Of a stretch of 64,000 bases of DNA, positions 35,005-59,377 are shown one piece after another. The notes under the pieces were generated by a model that saw only the letters and a program-made list of their open reading frames with translations, ran no database searches and had not been told where the DNA came from. The number at the start of each line of letters is the position of its first letter. Within the stretch, counting starts at the first letter, position 1. The position numbers and the translations under genes were made by a program. Location of the stretch: the sequence record NC_027399.1. One strand, given 5' to 3'.

Positions 35005-35369
35005 ATAAAGATCTTTCAAAATTAGTTGAAGACCTACGGAATATGCCGAAAATTGAACAAGTTGGTTCGTTTAAACGTTTCTTAGTTATTGCACGTGCAT
35101 TAGATAAAAAGGGACGTGTACTCAGTACCAAAACCAATTCATACACACAAACACATCCAGTACAGAAGAAGTTTGCAGTTAGGGCTGGACGGTGTGAAGC
35201 TGTATGGCTCCATGCAGAAATTCGTTGTTTGTTAGCTGCAAGAAAAGATGTTCATACATTACTAATTGCCAGAATTAACAAAGAAGGTCTTCCTGTTCCC
35301 GCAAAGCCATGTTCTGTTTGTGAACTGGCTATAAAAGAATATGGTGTAAAAAGGGTGATTTATACATGA
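35001..35369 (+). CDS. Zinc-dependent cytidine/CMP deaminase-like protein
   Basis: WLHAEI and AKPCSVC motifs. Confidence 0.78.
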   Translation: MNKDLSKLVEDLRNMPKIEQVGSFKRFLVIARALDKKGRVLSTKTNSYTQTHPVQKKFAVRAGRCEAVWLHAEIRCLLAARKDVHTLLIARINKEGLPVPAKPCSVCELAIKEYGVKRVIYT

Positions 35370-35539
35370 AAAATATTTTTAAAAAAGAATATGATGGTGA
35401 AAGCCTTTGTGATGTTCAACGAGATGTTGTTGAAGCATTCAGTACAGTATTCAATCCAGAAATGATTGATATCCCAGTCGATGAATACGGATTTCAGGAA
35501 GGTACATTTGTTGTAAGTATTAAATGGAAGCCAGAATAA
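35366..35539 (+). CDS. Small hypothetical protein (57 aa, not in track)
   Basis: ATGA and TAATG coupling on both sides. Confidence 0.6.
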   Translation: MKNIFKKEYDGESLCDVQRDVVEAFSTVFNPEMIDIPVDEYGFQEGTFVVSIKWKPE

Positions 35540-35667
35540 TGCGTGATCTTATTATGTTCTTTTCTGCAATCATAGGATTATGTACTTATTATTTTTCCAA
35601 TCATTATATTATAGCTATGGTATTTGCTATTATATATATTGCACTTTACAGTACTGACGACGAATAA
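35539..35667 (+). CDS. Small membrane protein (42 aa, not in track)
   Basis: TAATG coupling; hydrophobic. Confidence 0.5.
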   Translation: MRDLIMFFSAIIGLCTYYFSNHYIIAMVFAIIYIALYSTDDE

Positions 35668-35689
35668 AAGCACCCCAGCGGTGCTTTTT
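35666..35689 (+). terminator. Rho-independent terminator
   Basis: AAAGCACC-ccagc-GGTGCTTTTT. Confidence 0.8.
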
Positions 35690-35724
35690 GTATTTGTACA
35701 AAATATAATCTAAGTGACTTTTTA

Positions 35725-35766
35725 TTGATTTAAATCAAGAATAAAATCACCTTTTAGTGATATAAT
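35725..35766 (+). promoter_or_regulatory. FNR box plus -10 (class II FNR-type promoter) of the nrdD operon
   Basis: TTGAT-TTAA-ATCAA 35725-38, centred at 35731.5; TGaTATAAT with -10 at 35761-66. Confidence 0.8.
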
Positions 35767-35822
35767 ATGTTACGTAGCATTTAAATAAATCTACCACATA
35801 ATAAAAAAATCAAGGAAGAAAA

Positions 35823-37628
35823 ATGAATTCAAATAAATTATATGAAGATATTGAAAATTTTATTAATAATACAAATAAAGATATTACTACTGAAAATGCT
35901 AATAAAGATGCCAAAGTAGTTAATACACATAGAGATTTATTTGCTGGTATCCTTTCTAAACATTACGCCCAAGATACTATCCCAGAAGAATTTATTAAAT
36001 GGCACAATGATGGTTATGGACACTGCCACGATTTAGATTACTGGATCTCACCACTAACAAATTGCTGCCTTATTAATTATCCAGATATGCTTAGAAATGG
36101 TTTTAAAATTGGTAGTGCTAACATTGAAGAACCAAAAAGTTTTTCTGTGGCTTGTACGGTACTAACACAGATTGTGCAAGCGGTTGCAAGTTCACAATAT
36201 GGTGGACAATCATTAGCTCACATTGACAAATATTTAGAACCATATGTTCAAATGTCATGGAATAAACTATTAGAAAAACAAAAGAAATATAATTTAAGTA
36301 CCGAATTCATTGAAGACGAATTAAAAAAAGAAGTTTATGATGGGTGTCAAACATTTTTATATCAATTAAACAGTACTGTGTCCGTGTCAGGTCAAACCCC
36401 TTTCATATCTATTAGTTTAGGTTTAAGTACTACTAAATTTGGACGTTTAATTACTGAACAATATTTAAAAGTTCATGAAAAAGGTTTAGGTAAAGATGGC
36501 ATTACTCCAGTATTTCCGAAAGTTATTTTCTTTTTAGAAGATGGTATTAATACTAATAGTACTGATCCAAATTATGATTTAAAACAACAAGCATTACATT
36601 GTAGTTCTAAAAGAATTTATCCTGATTTCGTTAGTGTTACATTGAATAAAGAAACCACAGGTAGTACTTCTGAAGCTGTTACTCCAATGGGTTGTCGTTC
36701 ATTCCTTTCCAAATGGATAAATGAAGATGGTGAAGAGCAATATAATGGCCGTTGTAATTTAGGGGTGGCATCAATCAACCTACCGTTAATTGCTCTTGAA
36801 AGTACGTCAGACGCCGTTTTCTTTGACAAGTTACACCATCACATGGACATGGCATACCGCTTCTTATCACTTCGTGTAGAGCGTTTAAAAGACACAAAAG
36901 CCCGACAGAATCCAGTACTGTACATGTACGGAGCCTTAGCTCGTTTAGATCCAGATGAGACTATTGAGCAACTATTTTACAATGGTAGAAGTTCCATTAG
37001 TATTGGGTATGTTGGTTTATCTGAATGTTCTGAAATTCTTAAAGGAAAAATAGACAAAGATTTTGGATTAAAAGTACTAAAATATATGCAAATGAAATGC
37101 AATCAATATAAAGAAGAAACTAATATCGCATATAGTTTATATGGAACACCAGCCGAGAGTTTGTGTTATAAATTTGCAAAAGCTATAAATGAGAAATACC
37201 CCTCTGTATTGAATAGAGATTACATTAGTAATTCATTCCATTATCCAGTTCATTATGATATTTCAATTTTTGATAAATTTCAATATGAAAGTTTATTTGG
37301 AAATATCAGTTCAGGTGGTAATATTAGTTATGTTGAAACTCCAAATCTTTCTAATAATTTAAAAGCATTAGAAACAATAGTTGATTATGCTAGTACGAAA
37401 GTACAATATTTCGGTATAAATCAACCAGTGGATCACTGCTATGAATGTGGATATGATGGACAATTCAACGTAGATAAAAATGGATATAATTGCCCACACT
37501 GTGGTAATAATGATGAAAGTACTATATCAGTTATTAGACGTGTTTCAGGTTATCTTGGTGCACCAAATAGTCGTCCGTTCAATAAGGGAAAACAAGCCGA
37601 AGTAATTGAAAGAATTAAACACCAATAA
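35823..37628 (+). CDS. nrdD: Anaerobic (class III) ribonucleoside-triphosphate reductase
   Basis: [42 protein letters not shown], CxxC...CxxC and RRVSGYLG. Confidence 0.95.
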
Positions 37629-37638
37629 GGAGTCAATT

Positions 37639-38001
37639 ATGACAATTAAAGCAAAACAAATTTTATCCGGCGAACATACTGGAACAATCTTTTTACACGA
37701 TGATGAATATGCACGTATTTTAGTATCAAAAACATTTTCAGAAGATGATGAAGTATTATTCAGTACTTTTGAAAATGAAGAAATGCGTGAAGTTGATATT
37801 CAAGAACAACCAAAAATTGAAGGTGGTCAACATTTAAATGTAAATGTATTATCACGTTCTCAATTAGAAGAAGCACAGAAATTTCCTGAAAAATATCCTC
37901 AACTTACTATTCGTGTTTCTGGATATGCAGTTCGTTTTAATTCTCTTACGAAAGAACAACAAAATGATGTAATTTCACGAACTTTCACTACTAAGTTCTA
38001 A
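37639..38001 (+). CDS. grcA: Autonomous glycyl radical cofactor (GrcA/YfiD type)
   Basis: [11 protein letters not shown]...[31 protein letters not shown]; SD AAGGAG. Confidence 0.93.
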
Positions 38002-38005
38002 TCTA

Positions 38006-38353
38006 ATGTTTTTTGAATATGATGATGAAAATATATATCCAATTGTGGTTAATAAGTATAAAGAACCATATGATGTATATATTGGAAGAGGTTCAAAATG
38101 GGGTAATCCGTTTACTCACATAAAAAATCGTGATACGAAAGCTGAGTTTATTGTCAATACCAGAGAAGAATCTATTTCAAAATATAGAGAATGGATATTT
38201 AATAAAATTGAAAATGGTGAAATTACCATTGATGAGTTACTAGAATTATCTGGTAAAAAATTAGGATGTTTTTGTAAGCCTAAATCATGTCATGGTGATG
38301 TTCTTGTGGAAATAGTGAGTGCGTTATTAGATGAATTATCAAACAATAATTAA
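38006..38353 (+). CDS. DUF4326-like protein
   Basis: DVYIGRGSKWGNPF...L.GK.LGCFCKPKSCHGDVL. Confidence 0.8.
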   Translation: MFFEYDDENIYPIVVNKYKEPYDVYIGRGSKWGNPFTHIKNRDTKAEFIVNTREESISKYREWIFNKIENGEITIDELLELSGKKLGCFCKPKSCHGDVLVEIVSALLDELSNNN

Positions 38354-38801
38354 AGATGACTTAATAAATGGGGAGGGAGTTAGATGCTCCCTTTTTGTTT
38401 CGGGTTGTTCAATGGGTTGTAAAAATTGCTACAATGAAAAAGCATGGGATTATAGAAGCGGTACTGAATTCGGTACTGAACATGTCGAGCTTATACTAAA
38501 CGAATTATCTAAATCATATATATCAGGATTATCATTACTTGGTGGTGATCCACTTATGCCTAAAAATTTCAGTACTGTGATTGAACTTTGTAAAATTGTT
38601 AAAGAACAGTATCCTGACAAAAATATTTGGTGTTGGAGTGGTTACACACTTGATGAAATTATAAATAATCATGCGGCCCCTGTATTAGAATATATTGATG
38701 TTCTAATTGATGGAAAATTCAAAGAAGAACTAAAAGATTTATCTCTACCATATAGAGGCTCTAGAAATCAACGTATTTTATATAAAGGGAAAGATTTTTG
38801 A
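38331..38801 (+). CDS. nrdG: Anaerobic RNR activating enzyme (radical SAM)
   Basis: NGEGVRCSLFVSGCSMGCKNCYN (CxxxCxxC), GGDP and RGSRNQ. Confidence 0.93.
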   Translation: MNYQTIIKDDLINGEGVRCSLFVSGCSMGCKNCYNEKAWDYRSGTEFGTEHVELILNELSKSYISGLSLLGGDPLMPKNFSTVIELCKIVKEQYPDKNIWCWSGYTLDEIINNHAAPVLEYIDVLIDGKFKEELKDLSLPYRGSRNQRILYKGKDF

Positions 38802-38962
38802 TGAAATATAGTGATCTAATTACTGAAAAAATTCGTAAACGTGGTGATAAATGGGAAGTGACCGATAGTACTGGTAAAAAGGTATTAGGTACACACCCAA
38901 CACGTGAAGAAGCACTTAAACAACTCCGTGCAGTAGAATGGTCTAAGCACAGTGGTAAATAA
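38801..38962 (+). CDS. Small basic protein (53 aa, not in track)
   Basis: MKYSDLITEKIRKRGDKWEVTDSTGKKVLGTHPTREEALKQLRAVEWSKHSGK; TGATG coupling. Confidence 0.7.
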   Translation: MKYSDLITEKIRKRGDKWEVTDSTGKKVLGTHPTREEALKQLRAVEWSKHSGK

Positions 38963-38963
38963 T

Positions 38964-38989
38964 AAAAGCCTCCATATGGAGGCTTTTTT
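38964..38989. terminator. Bidirectional terminator
   Basis: AAAAGCCTCC-atat-GGAGGCTTTTTT. Confidence 0.85.
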
Positions 38990-38990
38990 A

Positions 38991-41201
38991 TTAGCTATTG
39001 AATGATATTACATAATCAAAATCAGCGTGGAAAGAAAAATCAAAAGTTCCTGCTGGATGTGAAAATGAGGTTCCTGCACTATCTTTTAAAATTGTTAATA
39101 CATCAGTACTTGGAGTAACTAATGGTATTAATGTCACACCAGTTGCCTGTGGAGTAAACACACTACCTTTTGTATATCCAGTTTGAATTGAGCTTGAAAT
39201 AAATGGTAAACCAGATATTCTAAATGGTCCAGCCGTATTAATAGTCAAATTACTATTTCTCAATCTTATATGTATTCTGATTATATCACCGAATCTGTGA
39301 TATATACCAGTTGCTTCCGTTAGAGTTATATAACTTCCTGCAATTTGAAGTACAGGAGTAAATGTTCCATAATCATATTTAAATTGTGCATTTGATGAAG
39401 TGAATACCAACGGTTGAACAAATGCATATGAACTATTGAAAACGTATTTGCTTACCCAACTATTTTTAAACTCCTGAAGGGTTAACATTGAATAACTACT
39501 AGTATCATCTGATCTTCTATATTGTCTATGTATTTGACCACCAGTAACAATTGGGTTTATTTCATTTGAGACTGATTGTTGAACATGTCCAGATCTAGTA
39601 ACATCCATACAACCAATATTACCTCTACATACCATTGCTGGGAAGAAATTTTGTGAAGGATCCCAAGGGTCTACGTTATCTACATTAAAACGATTACCGG
39701 TTGTATTACCGGCAGCATAATTGATTATACCAACTCTTTCTAAAATTACATTTCCTATTTTACTATTACCTACCCATGAACCTGATTGTGATGTATGATA
39801 AAATGGAGTTCTCGGAGACCACATTATTTTGGCTTCTAAAATATTACAATTTAATATTTCACGACCATATCTTGAATATACAGTTTTGGCACGACCTGTT
39901 ATTCCTTTATATTCACCCAACGGCCATACACCAGTTTGTTTATTATTTGATAATCTACCACCATTTGCGGTTGTTATGGAATTAGCAGTTTTAAAAAAAT
40001 ATGTATTAAAAAAATTATCCAGTGAAGAATATGCAGTATGCGTGAAATTAAGACTTGTATCACCATAATAGTGATATTTTTCAGTGAAACTAGAATCATT
40101 CCATCCTGCTCTATAAATGTCTGATGCAGGATATGGTGGTAAATAAGTTGATGCATAAGCATAGTTTCTTGTTAGCCATTGCCCACCAAATACATCACCT
40201 GCTATATTATACCATAATTTAATAAATCCTCTTTCAACTGCGTCTTCACCTTGAAATATCCCGGTTATTCCACAACTTGAAATTTGTAAATTATCCTCAG
40301 TTGAAAATGCACTAATTCCTTCACATAATCTACCAATCATAAATCCTGATATATTTAAATCATGCATATGATATCTTACATAACCATCTTTTCCAGAATC
40401 ACCAGAAATAAAAACACCAATTGTTCCATTTAAATCATATGGCCCACTAGTTTTGCTCCAATTACCACGAATACCAGTAGTTTGCATATTTGTTCCAATT
40501 ATAACAGAATCGTTGTATAGTCTAATTGCTGCCCTCATTGTATAAATTGGTTCTGGATCTATATTTTGATCAGTTCCGGCAGTTATCCATCCCGGATAAA
40601 CAGTACCGTCATCTCTTGGTAATTCATAAGTTTGTGGAAATGTTATACATGGATATCTTTGTGACAATACAACTGGTAAATTATTAGTTTTTCCATAATC
40701 AATTGCCGCTTGTAAATAAGGAACTGCATCTAATGTAGTTCCATGTATATATTTTTCATTATTAATGACAAACATTTCTGGAGTTATAAATTTTAATGCA
40801 TCTTTTAATACTCCACCAGTATCAAGTGTTATATTATTTGAAATATTATCCAAATTTTTTTGTACTGATAACCCGTTACTAGTTCCAATTTTACCAGCAG
40901 CATCATCATTAGAAAGAATAATTTGTTCTAAAATATTAATTTGATATGATGATATATTAGTTACTATAATAATAGTTGATTCATCTACAATATTCCAAGA
41001 ATCAACCATCCCTGTTTCATTCCCATTAAGTTTCCAAATTGTTTCAGTACTGGAATCATATACAAATTTTAAACCAGCAATATCTAGTCCATCTTCTAAA
41101 TATTTTACTTCCTCAATTTTTGACCCAGTAATTCTTGCTATGCTTTGTATATTAGTTTCTTTAGAAACTGAACCTTTCGGTTGTATTAAACTATTTGTCA
41201 T
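38991..41201 (-). CDS. Tailspike / putative capsule depolymerase (QPKGS N-terminal type), 736 aa
   Basis: N-terminus LIQPKGSVSKETN; D...LQAAID head motif; beta-helix-like body. Confidence 0.85.
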   Translation of the reverse strand: MTNSLIQPKGSVSKETNIQSIARITGSKIEEVKYLEDGLDIAGLKFVYDSSTETIWKLNGNETGMVDSWNIVDESTIIIVTNISSYQINILEQIILSNDDAAGKIGTSNGLSVQKNLDNISNNITLDTGGVLKDALKFITPEMFVINNEKYIHGTTLDAVPYLQAAIDYGKTNNLPVVLSQRYPCITFPQTYELPRDDGTVYPGWITAGTDQNIDPEPIYTMRAAIRLYNDSVIIGTNMQTTGIRGNWSKTSGPYDLNGTIGVFISGDSGKDGYVRYHMHDLNISGFMIGRLCEGISAFSTEDNLQISSCGITGIFQGEDAVERGFIKLWYNIAGDVFGGQWLTRNYAYASTYLPPYPASDIYRAGWNDSSFTEKYHYYGDTSLNFTHTAYSSLDNFFNTYFFKTANSITTANGGRLSNNKQTGVWPLGEYKGITGRAKTVYSRYGREILNCNILEAKIMWSPRTPFYHTSQSGSWVGNSKIGNVILERVGIINYAAGNTTGNRFNVDNVDPWDPSQNFFPAMVCRGNIGCMDVTRSGHVQQSVSNEINPIVTGGQIHRQYRRSDDTSSYSMLTLQEFKNSWVSKYVFNSSYAFVQPLVFTSSNAQFKYDYGTFTPVLQIAGSYITLTEATGIYHRFGDIIRIHIRLRNSNLTINTAGPFRISGLPFISSSIQTGYTKGSVFTPQATGVTLIPLVTPSTDVLTILKDSAGTSFSHPAGTFDFSFHADFDYVISFNS

Positions 41202-41227
41202 CTACTTAACCTCATATGTAATTGCAA

Positions 41228-41235
41228 TATTTATA
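41228..41235 (-). promoter_or_regulatory. T4-like late promoter TATAAATA
   Basis: Exact TATAAATA 27 nt upstream of ATG 41201. Confidence 0.7.
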
Positions 41236-41252
41236 ATTCATCAAAACCTTAA

Positions 41253-43208: not shown

Positions 43209-43239
43209 TATATAATTTCTCCAAATATAATCTTAATAA

Positions 43240-43275
43240 TATTTATAAAGAAAAAGCCCCCAGAGAGGGGGCTTT
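43240..43275 (-). promoter_or_regulatory. Late promoter TATAAATA abutting the upstream gene's terminator
   Basis: TATAAATA 43240-47; hairpin AAAGCCCCC/GGGGGCTTT 43253-75. Confidence 0.75.
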
Positions 43276-43284
43276 ATTGTTAGT

Positions 43285-45393: not shown

Positions 45394-45421
45394 TATAATT
45401 CTCCAAATATAATTATAATAA

Positions 45422-45458
45422 TATTTATAAATAAAAAGCCCCGATATTGGGGCTTTTT
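45422..45458 (-). promoter_or_regulatory. Late promoter TATAAATA abutting a terminator
   Basis: TATAAATA 45422-29; AAAAAGCCCC/GGGGCTTTTT 45433-58. Confidence 0.75.
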
Positions 45459-45464
45459 ATTTAA

Positions 45465-49046: not shown

Positions 49047-49088
49047 GTCATAATTCCTTTTAAATTAAAAATCTATAAAGTATTTAAT

Positions 49089-49120
49089 AAAAAATAAAGC
49101 CCAAGCTGGGCTTTATTTTT
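49089..49120 (-). terminator. Terminator between tailspike genes
   Basis: TAAAGCCCA-agc-TGGGCTTTA with A/T flanks. Confidence 0.75.
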
Positions 49121-49126
49121 AATCTT

Positions 49127-53230: not shown

Positions 53231-53259
53231 TACATTAACCTCAATTTACAATATACTAA

Positions 53260-53298
53260 TATTTATAATAAAAAAGCCCCCATAAGGAGGCTTTTTTT
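53260..53298 (-). promoter_or_regulatory. Late promoter TATAAATA abutting a terminator
   Basis: TATAAATA 53260-67; imperfect hairpin AAAAAGCC...GGCTTTTTTT 53271-98. Confidence 0.7.
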
Positions 53299-53299
53299 A

Positions 53300-55966
53300 T
53301 TATAATGATATTTGCCAATATATAGTAGATGCATCTAAATTATTAGAACTTGTTATAGTGAAAGATACACCATTAACGATATTAGAAATTGATAATGTTC
53401 CTATATTAGAAGATGATAATATTCTTTTAAGATCTATATTAGATACATATCTTAAAGTGCTCGCTGTACTAGATGTAGATAATTTAACAGCAGATGTATT
53501 AATGGTGGCAGTGCCTGCTGTTAATGTTACCATACCAGATGTTGGTGCGGTTGTTGAATTTATATCTAAAGTGTTGTTATTTAACATTGGTGACAATGGC
53601 TGTGATGAATATCCACCCAACAAATACCATAAGTTCCCATATCCTGCCATATTAGTATTTTTAACACTAACTAGTTCTGGTCTAATACCAGACGAGCCTC
53701 TAAAATATAAACATCTTGTTTGAATCGTACTGTAAGGAAAATCACAATTGTCAATATAAAGTGAAAATTGATTTGCAGGATCTGAATTAGAGCCACAATC
53801 GACACATGCACTTGAATTATCAATTCCTCTTGAATTTATAATCCTTCCGCCCAACATAGCATATCCATATTGATTGTTAAGAGCTTCACAATCTTCAATA
53901 TTTCCACCTTCCCATACTAAACTGAATCCGTTTCTACCATTATTAGTTGCTTTGCACCCAATGAGTCTAGTATTGATCGCACCGTCACCCTGACCGAATC
54001 CATCTAATGTTGAATAATCAGCCAAACAATTAATATATTTTACATTTCTTGCTCTTATTTGGAATCCATCATCACCAGATTTATATGCACGACAATTTGA
54101 AAATGTTATATTTCTTCCAATATCATGAGTATCAAAACCTGACAATGTTGACGACGTTGAAGTACAATCATTTATTAATATACCATTTGGTTCTCCATAT
54201 ATGGATGACCAATTTATAGAAACTCCATGTCTACAATCATCAAAAAAGCATTTATCAACAGTAACTTCTTCTGAATATCCTAAGATTTCTACACCATACC
54301 ACCCCTGATGATATGCATTACAATTTTCAATTAATACATTTCTACAACTGTTTATTTTTAATGCAGTTCTTCCGCTAACATCACCTGTGTATTTTTCTTT
54401 AGAACCATATAATTGTGTATTTTTAATAACGATATTATCACAATATACCATATTCATTGTTATTGGGAATAACGTAGTATAATTGATATTATTGAATGTT
54501 AAACCATCAATATTTACATTTTTCACAATATCCATTTTAGAAATTAATGTATTATCACTTATTGTAAAATCATAAAGGGCAATTTTATCAATATATAATT
54601 GATTAGCATCAATCTTCGTTATTTGTCTCATTATTCCAATTTTAACACCTTGAGCATTAACCCCTTCAACCAATTTTTCAGAACGAATTTCTACATAATC
54701 ACCAACTGAAAATTTAGATGCATCAGTAACATTAACAATAAAAGATGAACTAGACACGTCACTTGTTAATGTTGTTGTTATTGTAGTTGATACTGAACCA
54801 GAACAAATCAGACCTTGAATCGTTGGTCCAGATGGGAAAAGGAAAACATCTTTATTAAAATATAAATTTGTATTACTTTTTATAGTTAGTGCTTTAGTTA
54901 AAGTTAAATTAGAATCAAATCTCAACGATACGTTACCAGTAGATAAAAATGTATTAATACCATCAATAGTAGTAAACCATGATGATAATGCTGGACCAAT
55001 ATATCTTCTTTTAATCCTTTTATTATTAATGACGAAACATGTTCCACCATCTTCAACGGTAATGGTGTCATTATTGTCATAATAAAAATAACCAGCACCC
55101 TCCGTTGTGTTTAATGTTTTACCACAAACGAAAATCTCATTAATTTCATCCCAATTTATATTTTTTATATCTGAATAAATTATTTTAGATATACTATTAC
55201 TATTATATAATATATCAAATTCTTCTTGTATAGAATTTCCAGATTTAGTATTAATATATGAAGATGCATTTACATCCAATAATTCTTGTTTTAAAACATA
55301 TTCATCACTTTGGATAATAATATCACCAAGCATTATAATAATTTCGTCATCTTGATATAATTCTTCAGAAAAAGTGATGATTCTATCAGCACCAATACTA
55401 TAAGCAGTAATGGGATTCTGCAAAACACCATTAATATAAACAATTGCAGTACTGAAATCATATGGCACTTGAATTGTTGTTTGGCCTTGCATTGCATTAG
55501 CTGTATAAATTCTATTAAGTTTATCATTAGTACTGATATTCGGATTGCCAATAAAAACATATAATAAATCACCAGCTTCTAATTCAGTAGTGAATGTTAA
55601 TGTGCTACCAGATACGGTGTAATTCAACCCAGGTAATTGAATTGAACCATTAACAAATACAGTTATAGTACTGAATGTGAATGGAATATTAAAATCAGTT
55701 TGACCATCAGTTGCTGATGCAGAATATGTTTTAATACTTGCATTAAAATTCGGAGTAATTTTTTCAAAACCAGTACTGGTTTCGGGATTATTACCAAGGA
55801 CACCAACCCCATTCCACACTGTACCATCAGTGTATAACCAATAATCATCTGATGTTGCAGTAGTACCAGATTTCCACATTTTTAATGAATTTTTAGTTAG
55901 TCCATAAGCAACTTCAACAGTAGGTAGATGTGCGTTCCAGTCCAGAGTTAAACCCTCTGTTTCCAT
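53300..55966 (-). CDS. Tailspike / putative depolymerase with two docking-type repeats, 888 aa; lacks its N-terminal anchor because of an upstream frameshift
   Basis: AHLPTVEVAYGL module, two INGxLQ-type repeats, beta-helix. Confidence 0.85.
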   Translation of the reverse strand: METEGLTLDWNAHLPTVEVAYGLTKNSLKMWKSGTTATSDDYWLYTDGTVWNGVGVLGNNPETSTGFEKITPNFNASIKTYSASATDGQTDFNIPFTFSTITVFVNGSIQLPGLNYTVSGSTLTFTTELEAGDLLYVFIGNPNISTNDKLNRIYTANAMQGQTTIQVPYDFSTAIVYINGVLQNPITAYSIGADRIITFSEELYQDDEIIIMLGDIIIQSDEYVLKQELLDVNASSYINTKSGNSIQEEFDILYNSNSISKIIYSDIKNINWDEINEIFVCGKTLNTTEGAGYFYYDNNDTITVEDGGTCFVINNKRIKRRYIGPALSSWFTTIDGINTFLSTGNVSLRFDSNLTLTKALTIKSNTNLYFNKDVFLFPSGPTIQGLICSGSVSTTITTTLTSDVSSSSFIVNVTDASKFSVGDYVEIRSEKLVEGVNAQGVKIGIMRQITKIDANQLYIDKIALYDFTISDNTLISKMDIVKNVNIDGLTFNNINYTTLFPITMNMVYCDNIVIKNTQLYGSKEKYTGDVSGRTALKINSCRNVLIENCNAYHQGWYGVEILGYSEEVTVDKCFFDDCRHGVSINWSSIYGEPNGILINDCTSTSSTLSGFDTHDIGRNITFSNCRAYKSGDDGFQIRARNVKYINCLADYSTLDGFGQGDGAINTRLIGCKATNNGRNGFSLVWEGGNIEDCEALNNQYGYAMLGGRIINSRGIDNSSACVDCGSNSDPANQFSLYIDNCDFPYSTIQTRCLYFRGSSGIRPELVSVKNTNMAGYGNLWYLLGGYSSQPLSPMLNNNTLDINSTTAPTSGMVTLTAGTATINTSAVKLSTSSTASTLRYVSNIDLKRILSSSNIGTLSISNIVNGVSFTITSSNNLDASTIYWQISL

Positions 55967-56220
55967 TTTTTCTTTTAATTTGCTGTATATAACCGGAACC
56001 CAAGCAGTATCTGAAATACCACCATCAGTATTTGGATTATTAGTACTGGTAATATGAGGTAATGTACCTTTCCATACATATCCAGTTTTAATTGAAGTTA
56101 CTGGATCTGTATAATATAAAATTTGGTTGTTTGATACTAATCGTTTGTTAATAACAAAGTCACCAGCATCAATTAGTGCACCTGAAATATTTGTTGCAAA
56201 CTTAAATTGTTCAATGACAT
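55967..56220 (-). pseudogene. Frameshifted 5' part of the 888-aa tailspike
   Basis: SD GAGGT plus ATG 56220 gives MSLNNLS.. and stops after 15 codons. The -1 frame encodes NQILYYTD..GYVWKGTLPH..TDGGISDTAW, continuous with METEG. Confidence 0.8.
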
Positions 56221-56253
56221 ATTAAACCTCATCTAAAAGTTTATGTATAGTAT

Positions 56254-56281
56254 TATTTATGATGCACATTAGAACTAAATA
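56254..56281. promoter_or_regulatory. Back-to-back divergent late promoters
   Basis: CATAAATA on - (56254-61) and CTAAATA on + (56275-81). Confidence 0.6.
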
Positions 56282-56314
56282 CATGAAAGCAAATGCAAAC
56301 TAAGAGGTTTTGAC

Positions 56315-59305: not shown

Positions 59306-59309
59306 AAAT

Positions 59310-59345
59310 AAAAGCACCTTCGGGTGCTTTTATTTTTACTAAATA
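59310..59345 (+). terminator. Terminator with a UUCG loop followed by late promoter CTAAATA
   Basis: AAAAGCACC-TTCG-GGTGCTTTT; CTAAATA 59339-45. Confidence 0.8.
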
Positions 59346-59377
59346 CATAATAAAATCTTTATAACGAGGTTTATTAA

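Follow-up and report, generated by a model that had tools for sequence, protein, structure and literature searches.

Introduction

In Escherichia coli, the oxygen sensor FNR recognizes the consensus TTGATnnnnATCAA, and 19 of 23 activated promoters carry the site at −41.5 ± 4 (PMC3688515). The yfiD (grcA) promoter, with an FNR site mapped at −40.5, is a direct target of activation by FNR, which also binds at nrdD (PMC3688515); transcription of host nrdDG needs FNR (PMC4009431; PMC2892513). These reports confirm what a preliminary description of the phage locus studied here had taken as established, i.e., that host nrdDG and yfiD/grcA are FNR-activated. For grcA, a second, distal site is given as lying at −93.5 and as down-regulating in a passage of PMC3688515 that relies on another study (its reference 129). 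Host nrdDG has more than one FNR site as well as NrdR boxes (PMC2892513). In Rak2-like phages, a study of phage CBB described an ATAAATA late motif, RpoD-like early promoters and a gp55-like sigma factor, with FNR unmentioned (PMC5259590). A literature search, together with a survey of phage ribonucleotide reductases (PMC3653736), turned up no earlier description of an FNR site ahead of nrd genes in phages.

The locus considered here belongs to K64-1, a Klebsiella jumbo phage (Alcyoneusvirus, 346,602 bp). The window, i.e., the whole stretch of 64,000 nucleotides that was analyzed, is the last 64 kb of the K64-1 record, and its positions 35300-38900 are 100% identical to Klebsiella phage K64-1. 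Close relatives of this region (RaK2, Muenster and others) are 94-97% identical to it, and distant relatives, whose hosts are E. coli, Salmonella, K. aerogenes and Erwinia, are ~73% identical within nrdD. Like the nrdDG genes of E. coli and Salmonella, the phage class III reductase operon appears to have an FNR-linked promoter, but with one consensus box and no NrdR box. We have considerable confidence that the promoter is bound by host FNR and that its expression thereby depends on oxygen. With moderate confidence, we propose more specifically that the nrdD promoter is a class II FNR-activated sigma-70 promoter, which would report anoxia for an oxygen-labile reductase set.

Results

The nrdD Operon of Phage K64-1

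The region has the following features, given in window coordinates.

35666-35688, plus strand: intrinsic terminator (9-bp stem, T run), which ends the upstream dCMP-deaminase block and is predicted to insulate the nrdD promoter
35725-35738, no strand assigned: perfect FNR consensus box TTGATTTAAATCAA (TTGAT-TTAA-ATCAA), by pattern match, centre 35731.5
35758-35766, plus strand: extended −10 element TGaTATAAT (TG at 35758-59, TATAAT at 35761-35766), from the sequence, with no −35 hexamer upstream
35772-35773, plus strand: predicted sigma-70 start, 6-7 nt 3' of the −10 hexamer
35782-35787, plus strand: TAAATA, the T4-type late-promoter core of K64-1, invariant and exactly 43 nt after the box
35812-35818, plus strand: nrdD ribosome-binding site AAGGAAG, from the sequence
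35823-37628, plus strand: nrdD, class III anaerobic ribonucleotide reductase, 601 aa (Pfam NRDD, E = 2e-168)
37639-38001, plus strand: grcA/yfiD-like autonomous glycyl-radical cofactor, 120 aa (Pfam Gly_radical)
38006-38353, plus strand: DUF4326 protein inside the operon, by domain match
38331-38801, plus strand: nrdG, radical-SAM activase of NrdD (TIGR02491, 193 bits against a cut-off of 126; Pfam Fer4_12)
38801-38962, plus strand: small ORF of 53 aa, the last operon gene (weak DUF2188 match)
38964-38993, no strand assigned: bidirectional intrinsic terminator, AAAAGCCTCC-ATAT-GGAGGCTTTTTT, which closes the operon and a convergent tail gene

As read from the sequence, nrdD, the grcA-like gene, the DUF4326 gene, nrdG and the small ORF form an operon that is complete in itself and has a promoter of its own. 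The gap upstream of nrdD measures 160 bp, and the box is located in it 3' of the terminator and 5' of nrdD. The block upstream of this terminator consists of dCMP deaminase and small ORFs, and the terminator hairpin, AAAGCACCC..GGGTGCTTTTT, is conserved in relatives.

The nrdD product scored 768 bits with the equivalog profile NF006732 of NCBIfam (cut-off 657), matching profile positions 95-705. Because it joins this host-type profile of 712 positions only from position 95, the phage NrdD lacks the N-terminal ATP cone, which provides the overall-activity site; it is thus a short, cone-less phage type, unlike the host enzyme. The rV5-like relatives appear to carry additional N-terminal coding sequence in nrdD. 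The grcA-like product shares 60% identity with E. coli GrcA over 107 aa and reached 136 bits with TIGR04365, under the cut-off of 170. The DUF4326 gene, which overlaps the nrdG start by 23 nt, stands between grcA and nrdG in K64-1, A4 and UE-S1, and is absent from Munch, fENko-Kae01 and Hallingskeid. The aerobic genes nrdA and nrdB lie elsewhere in the K64-1 genome.

A Consensus FNR Box at a Predicted Class II Position

On re-reading, every sequence statement of the preliminary description proved correct. The perfect TTGAT-N4-ATCAA that it had reported at 35725-38 is exact, and TATAAT is present at 35761-66 with no consensus −35, as it had said: AGAATA, the hexamer 17 nt 5' of the −10, agrees with TTGACA at 2/6 positions, and a scan for sigma-70 hexamer pairs called no promoter at the nrdD site. 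The gap between the box and the −10 hexamer is 22 nt in K64-1. The placement of the box centre at −41.5 follows if the hexamer occupies −12 to −7 and transcription starts at the predicted position, 35773; were A35772 the start, the centre would lie at −40.5. Of the elements looked for in a class II promoter, K64-1 has, among others, TTGAT-N4-ATCAA and a usable −10 with a poor −35. In the leader, an Rfam search gave nothing above noise, and the predicted 5' UTR showed no significant fold (z = −0.8).

Two copies of the exact box pattern are present in the window where 0.57 ± 0.71 would be expected, and 11 of 100 shuffles contained two or more, so that the bare match is not significant; the preliminary description had itself considered one chance match per window plausible, and ~0.6 are indeed expected. 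The other perfect box (54599-54612) falls within a minus-strand ORF of 888 aa and is probably due to chance. A genome-wide scan, which had been suggested as a check, gave a divided answer. The nrdD box is the sole intergenic perfect one in the whole 346,602-bp genome, but there is no enrichment, with two perfect boxes against ~3 expected and 76 one-mismatch boxes, of which four are intergenic by a crude gene call. As these counts are at chance level, the case for the box rests on its position and conservation. One of the one-mismatch boxes, TTGATTTAGGTCAA, is found outside the window at 108141-108154 of the K64-1 record (about 8141 of locus L159), between the uvsX-like gp146 and the endonuclease gp148, 48 nt 5' of the ATG and with TAACAT 22 nt downstream; given 76 such boxes genome-wide, it is consistent with chance.

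Conservation in RaK2-Like Jumbo Phages

The region upstream of nrdD was read in annotated relatives and in IMG/VR loci collected with an NrdD alignment query, giving a clade sample of 19 RaK2-like jumbo-phage loci; a single-protein query had returned two loci, and the alignment query was used for the locus set. The set comprises phages of five host genera (Klebsiella, E. coli, Salmonella, Cronobacter and Erwinia phages) and several uncultured contigs of 345-378 kb, and includes Alcyoneusvirus, Asteriusvirus, GAP32/Mimasvirus, Munch-like phages, fENko-Kae01 and Erwinia phage Hallingskeid. NrdD identity among the 19 loci is 64-99%, and since they share common ancestry, conservation is to be read as a footprint and not as 19 independent events. 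Separately, IMG/VR was scanned for the exact pattern of box, 22-23 nt and TATAAT; among at least 119 stretches listed, one adjoins nrdD (L120, a Munch-like contig).

The box is kept in all 19 loci, 76-89 nt 5' of the ATG. It is perfect in 15 of them, and the other four differ by A10 to G alone, giving GTCAA. Conservation in relatives had been named as a check, and the box was retained throughout while the flanking DNA diverged. When anchored on the box, the 18 unique sequences aligned without gaps over 144 columns, with TTGAT, TCAA and a downstream TAAATA as the only fully invariant blocks; the mean top-base frequency was 0.98 at the ten specified box positions versus 0.57-0.67 in the flanks. 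The remaining 86 kb of the 15 loci outside the K64-1/RaK2 pair held no perfect and ten one-mismatch boxes, and the chance expectation of a box in the promoter interval is 0.003 per locus. The divergence of the surroundings points to purifying selection on the box and its spacing. It had been argued that the exact spacing ahead of these very genes is not chance, and the clade-wide position and conservation uphold this. A functionless palindrome arising by chance in AT-rich DNA would agree with the expected ~0.57 matches per 64 kb, the intragenic second match and the lack of genome-wide enrichment; it is nevertheless very unlikely, because box and spacing are kept in every related lineage although their neighbours have diverged.

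A TAnnnT hexamer follows in 17 of the 19 loci, at 22 nt after the box in six and at 23 nt in 11, and is a perfect TATAAT in 12 of the 19. The remaining two (L144 and L153) have a degenerate hexamer at 23 nt, TTTTTT and TTGAAT respectively, and still a perfect box. The same site is present in the Erwinia phage, and the "gut niche" of the preliminary description is therefore too narrow. Most relatives carry TTGATCTAGATCAA, which we take to be the idealized FNR core of the synthetic FF(−41.5) and FF(−61.5) test promoters that defined the class II and class I spacing rules; those promoters are artificial, whereas the phage promoters are natural and reside in virulent phages.

In the GAP32-like group (L009 at 2407-2470; L132, L133, L138, L144, L153, L154), the spacer between box and −10 contains a GC-rich hairpin, ACCCC..GGGGT, with a T run, which looks like the terminator of the upstream gene embedded in the promoter. 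This group also has a conserved GAACAAACGTTAA motif just 5' of the box.

A Putative Late Promoter Downstream of the Box

From the end of the box to TAAATA is exactly 43 nt in 19/19 loci (L002-L006 and L132-L154 among the positions), whereas the distance from TAAATA to the ATG varies from 27 to 40 nt and the −10 shifts between 22 and 23 nt. TAAATA thereby stands 15 nt after the −10 in K64-1 and 14-15 nt across the clade. The K64-1 version, TTTAAATA, matches TATAAATA at 7/8 positions. Within the window, TAAATA precedes 7/7 tail/tail-fibre intergenic regions versus 3/23 others, the nrdD region being among those three. With seven copies against 8.3 expected, the 9-mer TAAATAAAT shows no enrichment in the window, and it is the 6-mer core and its position that matter.

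The seven tail/tail-fibre (depolymerase) gaps, at 41202-41252, 43209-43284, 45394-45464, 49047-49126, 53231-53299, 55967-56314 and 59306-59377, contain a terminator hairpin and then TAAATA, often as TATAAATA, 26-45 nt before the ATG. Judged by motif and layout, this is a T4-like late-promoter grammar. Two phage sigma factors are annotated in the K64-1 record, gp111 and gp304, at 72636-73514 and 190474-191373 respectively; gp111 is named "RNA polymerase late transcription sigma factor" on the basis of annotation, and gp304 belongs to the sigma-70 family and could alter which holoenzyme meets FNR in mid-infection. K64-1 thereby resembles T4, whose late promoters use TATAAATA and gp55, in having a TATAAATA-like motif and a gp55-like sigma factor. 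The invariant TAAATA, its usage at tail genes and the annotated late sigma factor suggest that the operon probably also has a late promoter, and with TAAATA in the leader, FNR may not be the sole route to expression.

A T4-like distance of 6 nt between TAAATA and the late start would place the centre of the box at −61.5, two helical turns away from −41.5 and in a class I position. FNR might then act mainly as a class I activator on a TAAATA promoter read by a gp55-like sigma factor, alone or with the sigma-70 promoter, recruiting polymerase via the alpha C-terminal domain, so that the oxygen sensor would gate late-phase expression. The 43-nt distance, fixed in 19/19 loci while the −10 and ATG distances shift, speaks for such an arrangement, as do the retention of box and TAAATA in L144 and L153, which have no recognizable −10, and the 7/7 versus 3/23 distribution of TAAATA. 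A late sigma factor is annotated (gp111), the clade has the ATAAATA late motif (PMC5259590), and FNR sites at −61.5 and −60.5 are mentioned in PMC3688515. Against it, T4-type late promoters are independent of upstream DNA, and the K64-1 motif reaches only 7/8. Phapecoctavirus ukendt has a box and −10 without TAAATA at 43 nt, and the fixed distance could reflect a low indel rate in a short stretch constrained at both ends. To our knowledge, moreover, there is no precedent for a host activator of the CRP/FNR family on a gp55-type holoenzyme. On balance, we regard action of FNR chiefly from −61.5 as unlikely. A dual arrangement, in which FNR serves both a sigma-70 promoter at −41.5 and a gp55-type late promoter at −61.5 and would gate the reductase throughout infection, is suggested by the invariant 43 nt in 19/19 loci and by the survival of the box in two lineages lacking a −10; we entertain it only tentatively, at the same low level. 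Weighing against the class II reading itself are the sigma factors gp111 and gp304, and the phage may modify host polymerase in a way that could block activator contacts.

The Host grcA Promoter and the Identity of the Binder

The E. coli grcA (yfiD) promoter has the identical proximal 14-mer, an identical 20-mer, TTTTTATTGATTTAAATCAA, and the same 22-nt gap to the −10. The likeness extends to what is controlled, as the host promoter governs a glycyl-radical protein and the phage operon holds a GrcA homologue. Among grcA loci from 80 species of Enterobacterales and Pasteurellales, TTGATTTAAATCAA is the commonest proximal box (26 times), and both the tolerated A10-to-G variants and the 22-nt gap of these host promoters match those of the phages. 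The Klebsiella grcA promoter has TGa before its −10. The two kinds of promoter differ in that host grcA has its distal FNR site, TTGATGTAAAACAA, ~53 bp upstream, where the phage has a terminator, and in that nrdD is the first gene behind the phage promoter, which has TAAATA at about +10 and resembles the host one in its functional elements alone. Alignment of the Klebsiella grcA promoter with that of the phage gave nothing beyond those elements, and a BLAST search of 5,426 E. coli genomes gave matches to the coding part of grcA (69-73% identity) and none to the promoter. A GTG..TTTTT flank 5' of the box is similar in host (L163 at 270-330; L164-L243) and phage promoters. The phage promoter may have been captured from a grcA gene or may have converged on the same solution; nothing outside the functional elements aligns.

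The grcA match also bears on whether the promoter is essentially constitutive or early, working via its extended −10, with the box modulatory or a vestige of a host promoter of the grcA type that was captured. The TGnTATAAT of K64-1 is perfect and may support transcription in the absence of FNR, and the shared 20-mer and the grcA homologue in the operon would suit a relic. We nonetheless find this doubtful. In A4, UE-S1 and Hallingskeid the TG motif is absent and the box is kept; the Hallingskeid operon has a box and no grcA gene, and none is annotated in that of GAP32. A vestigial site would not remain invariant amid diverging flanks, and outside the box, the phage promoter showed no resemblance to E. 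coli sequences by BLAST.

A different protein, either host CRP or a phage helix-turn-helix regulator, might bind the palindrome. The majority of annotated phage proteins are labelled hypothetical, leaving room for such a regulator, and the central TGATCTAGATCA of most relatives also forms the middle of the ideal CRP site. The half-sites, however, are TTGA, with the FNR-specific T, and not GTGA, with the CRP-specific G; compared with TGTGA-N6-TCACA, the phage box has mismatches at 4/10 core positions. FNR-activated host grcA promoters have the same sequence, spacing and tolerated variant. A tblastn search of the phage genome with E. coli FNR, a weak test next to a profile search, found no FNR/CRP homologue (best E = 0.39). 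Another binder is accordingly improbable in our estimation, and with no phage FNR homologue found by tblastn, a host protein is the likely one. NrdR boxes (paired 16-bp acaCwAtATaTwGtgt) were considered as well; the best candidate in 35660-35830 has 5/16 mismatches, which is background, as the window contains 141 sites that match as well.

Reductase Promoters of Other Phage Groups

Phapecoctavirus ukendt, whose NrdD is ~60% identical, has TTGATTTTCCTCAA, a gap of 22 nt and TAGAAT, i.e., the same geometry. In a 153-kb contig (L141), TTGATCCTGAACAA is followed after 21 nt by TGgTAAAAT. Justusliebigvirus alia has TTGACTAAGATCAA, 22 nt, TAAAAT and then a terminator-like hairpin; the hairpin is located 5' of nrdD and 3' of the putative −10 and might act as an attenuator, unless the site does not function in this phage type. 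In loci of the J. alia type (L010 at 2400-2503; L139, L148), the FNR-like box and the stop codon of the preceding reductase gene overlap.

No box with one mismatch or fewer was found upstream of nrdD in T4-like, rV5-like, T5-like, Felix O1-like, Slopekvirus, nt-1 and ICP1 loci, and in several boxless loci nrdD lies within a longer operon. T4-type nrdD and nrdG encode the same enzymes as in K64-1. In the Tequatrovirus examined, nrdD belongs to a gene 49-nrdD block for which a MotA-type middle promoter is annotated, and no box with up to one mismatch occurs within 260 nt.

Discussion

The preliminary description had read the site as a functional class II site of the FNR type ahead of an anaerobic reductase operon. 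The clade, the Phapecoctavirus locus, the FNR-type half-sites and the grcA match all support this reading. According to the mechanism that we propose, upstream transcription would stop at 35666-88, and the gap would hold a dedicated, activator-dependent promoter in which the FNR box, centred ~41 bp before the predicted start, takes the place of a −35. Under anoxia, pre-existing host FNR would carry a [4Fe-4S] cluster, dimerize and bind the box, and the dimer would contact sigma-70 region 4 and the alpha subunit, switching on nrdD, the grcA-like gene, the DUF4326 gene, nrdG and the small ORF. In air, FNR would be monomeric and would not bind DNA; the reductase would not be made from the nrdD promoter, and the phage would rely on aerobic NrdAB.

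Virulent phages are usually pictured with a fixed programme and factors of their own. An FNR-dependent promoter is a well-known kind of promoter, and what would be new is its setting in a clade of virulent jumbo phages and, possibly, its coupling to a late promoter. As FNR is pre-existing and responds through its iron-sulfur cluster, the phage could read oxygen without host expression after shut-off. Given the exact coupling to a late motif, it may further be asked whether a host activator is able to cooperate with a phage sigma factor.

If the proposed regulation holds, it would document environmental sensing by a lytic phage through a global regulator of its host, and would provide a compact, natural, anaerobically induced phage promoter. 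It would also bear on therapeutic phages of Klebsiella and E. coli in the anoxic gut, in abscesses and in biofilms. Across a whole clade of Enterobacterales jumbo phages, the oxygen sensor of the host thus appears to govern whether an enzyme that oxygen destroys is made.
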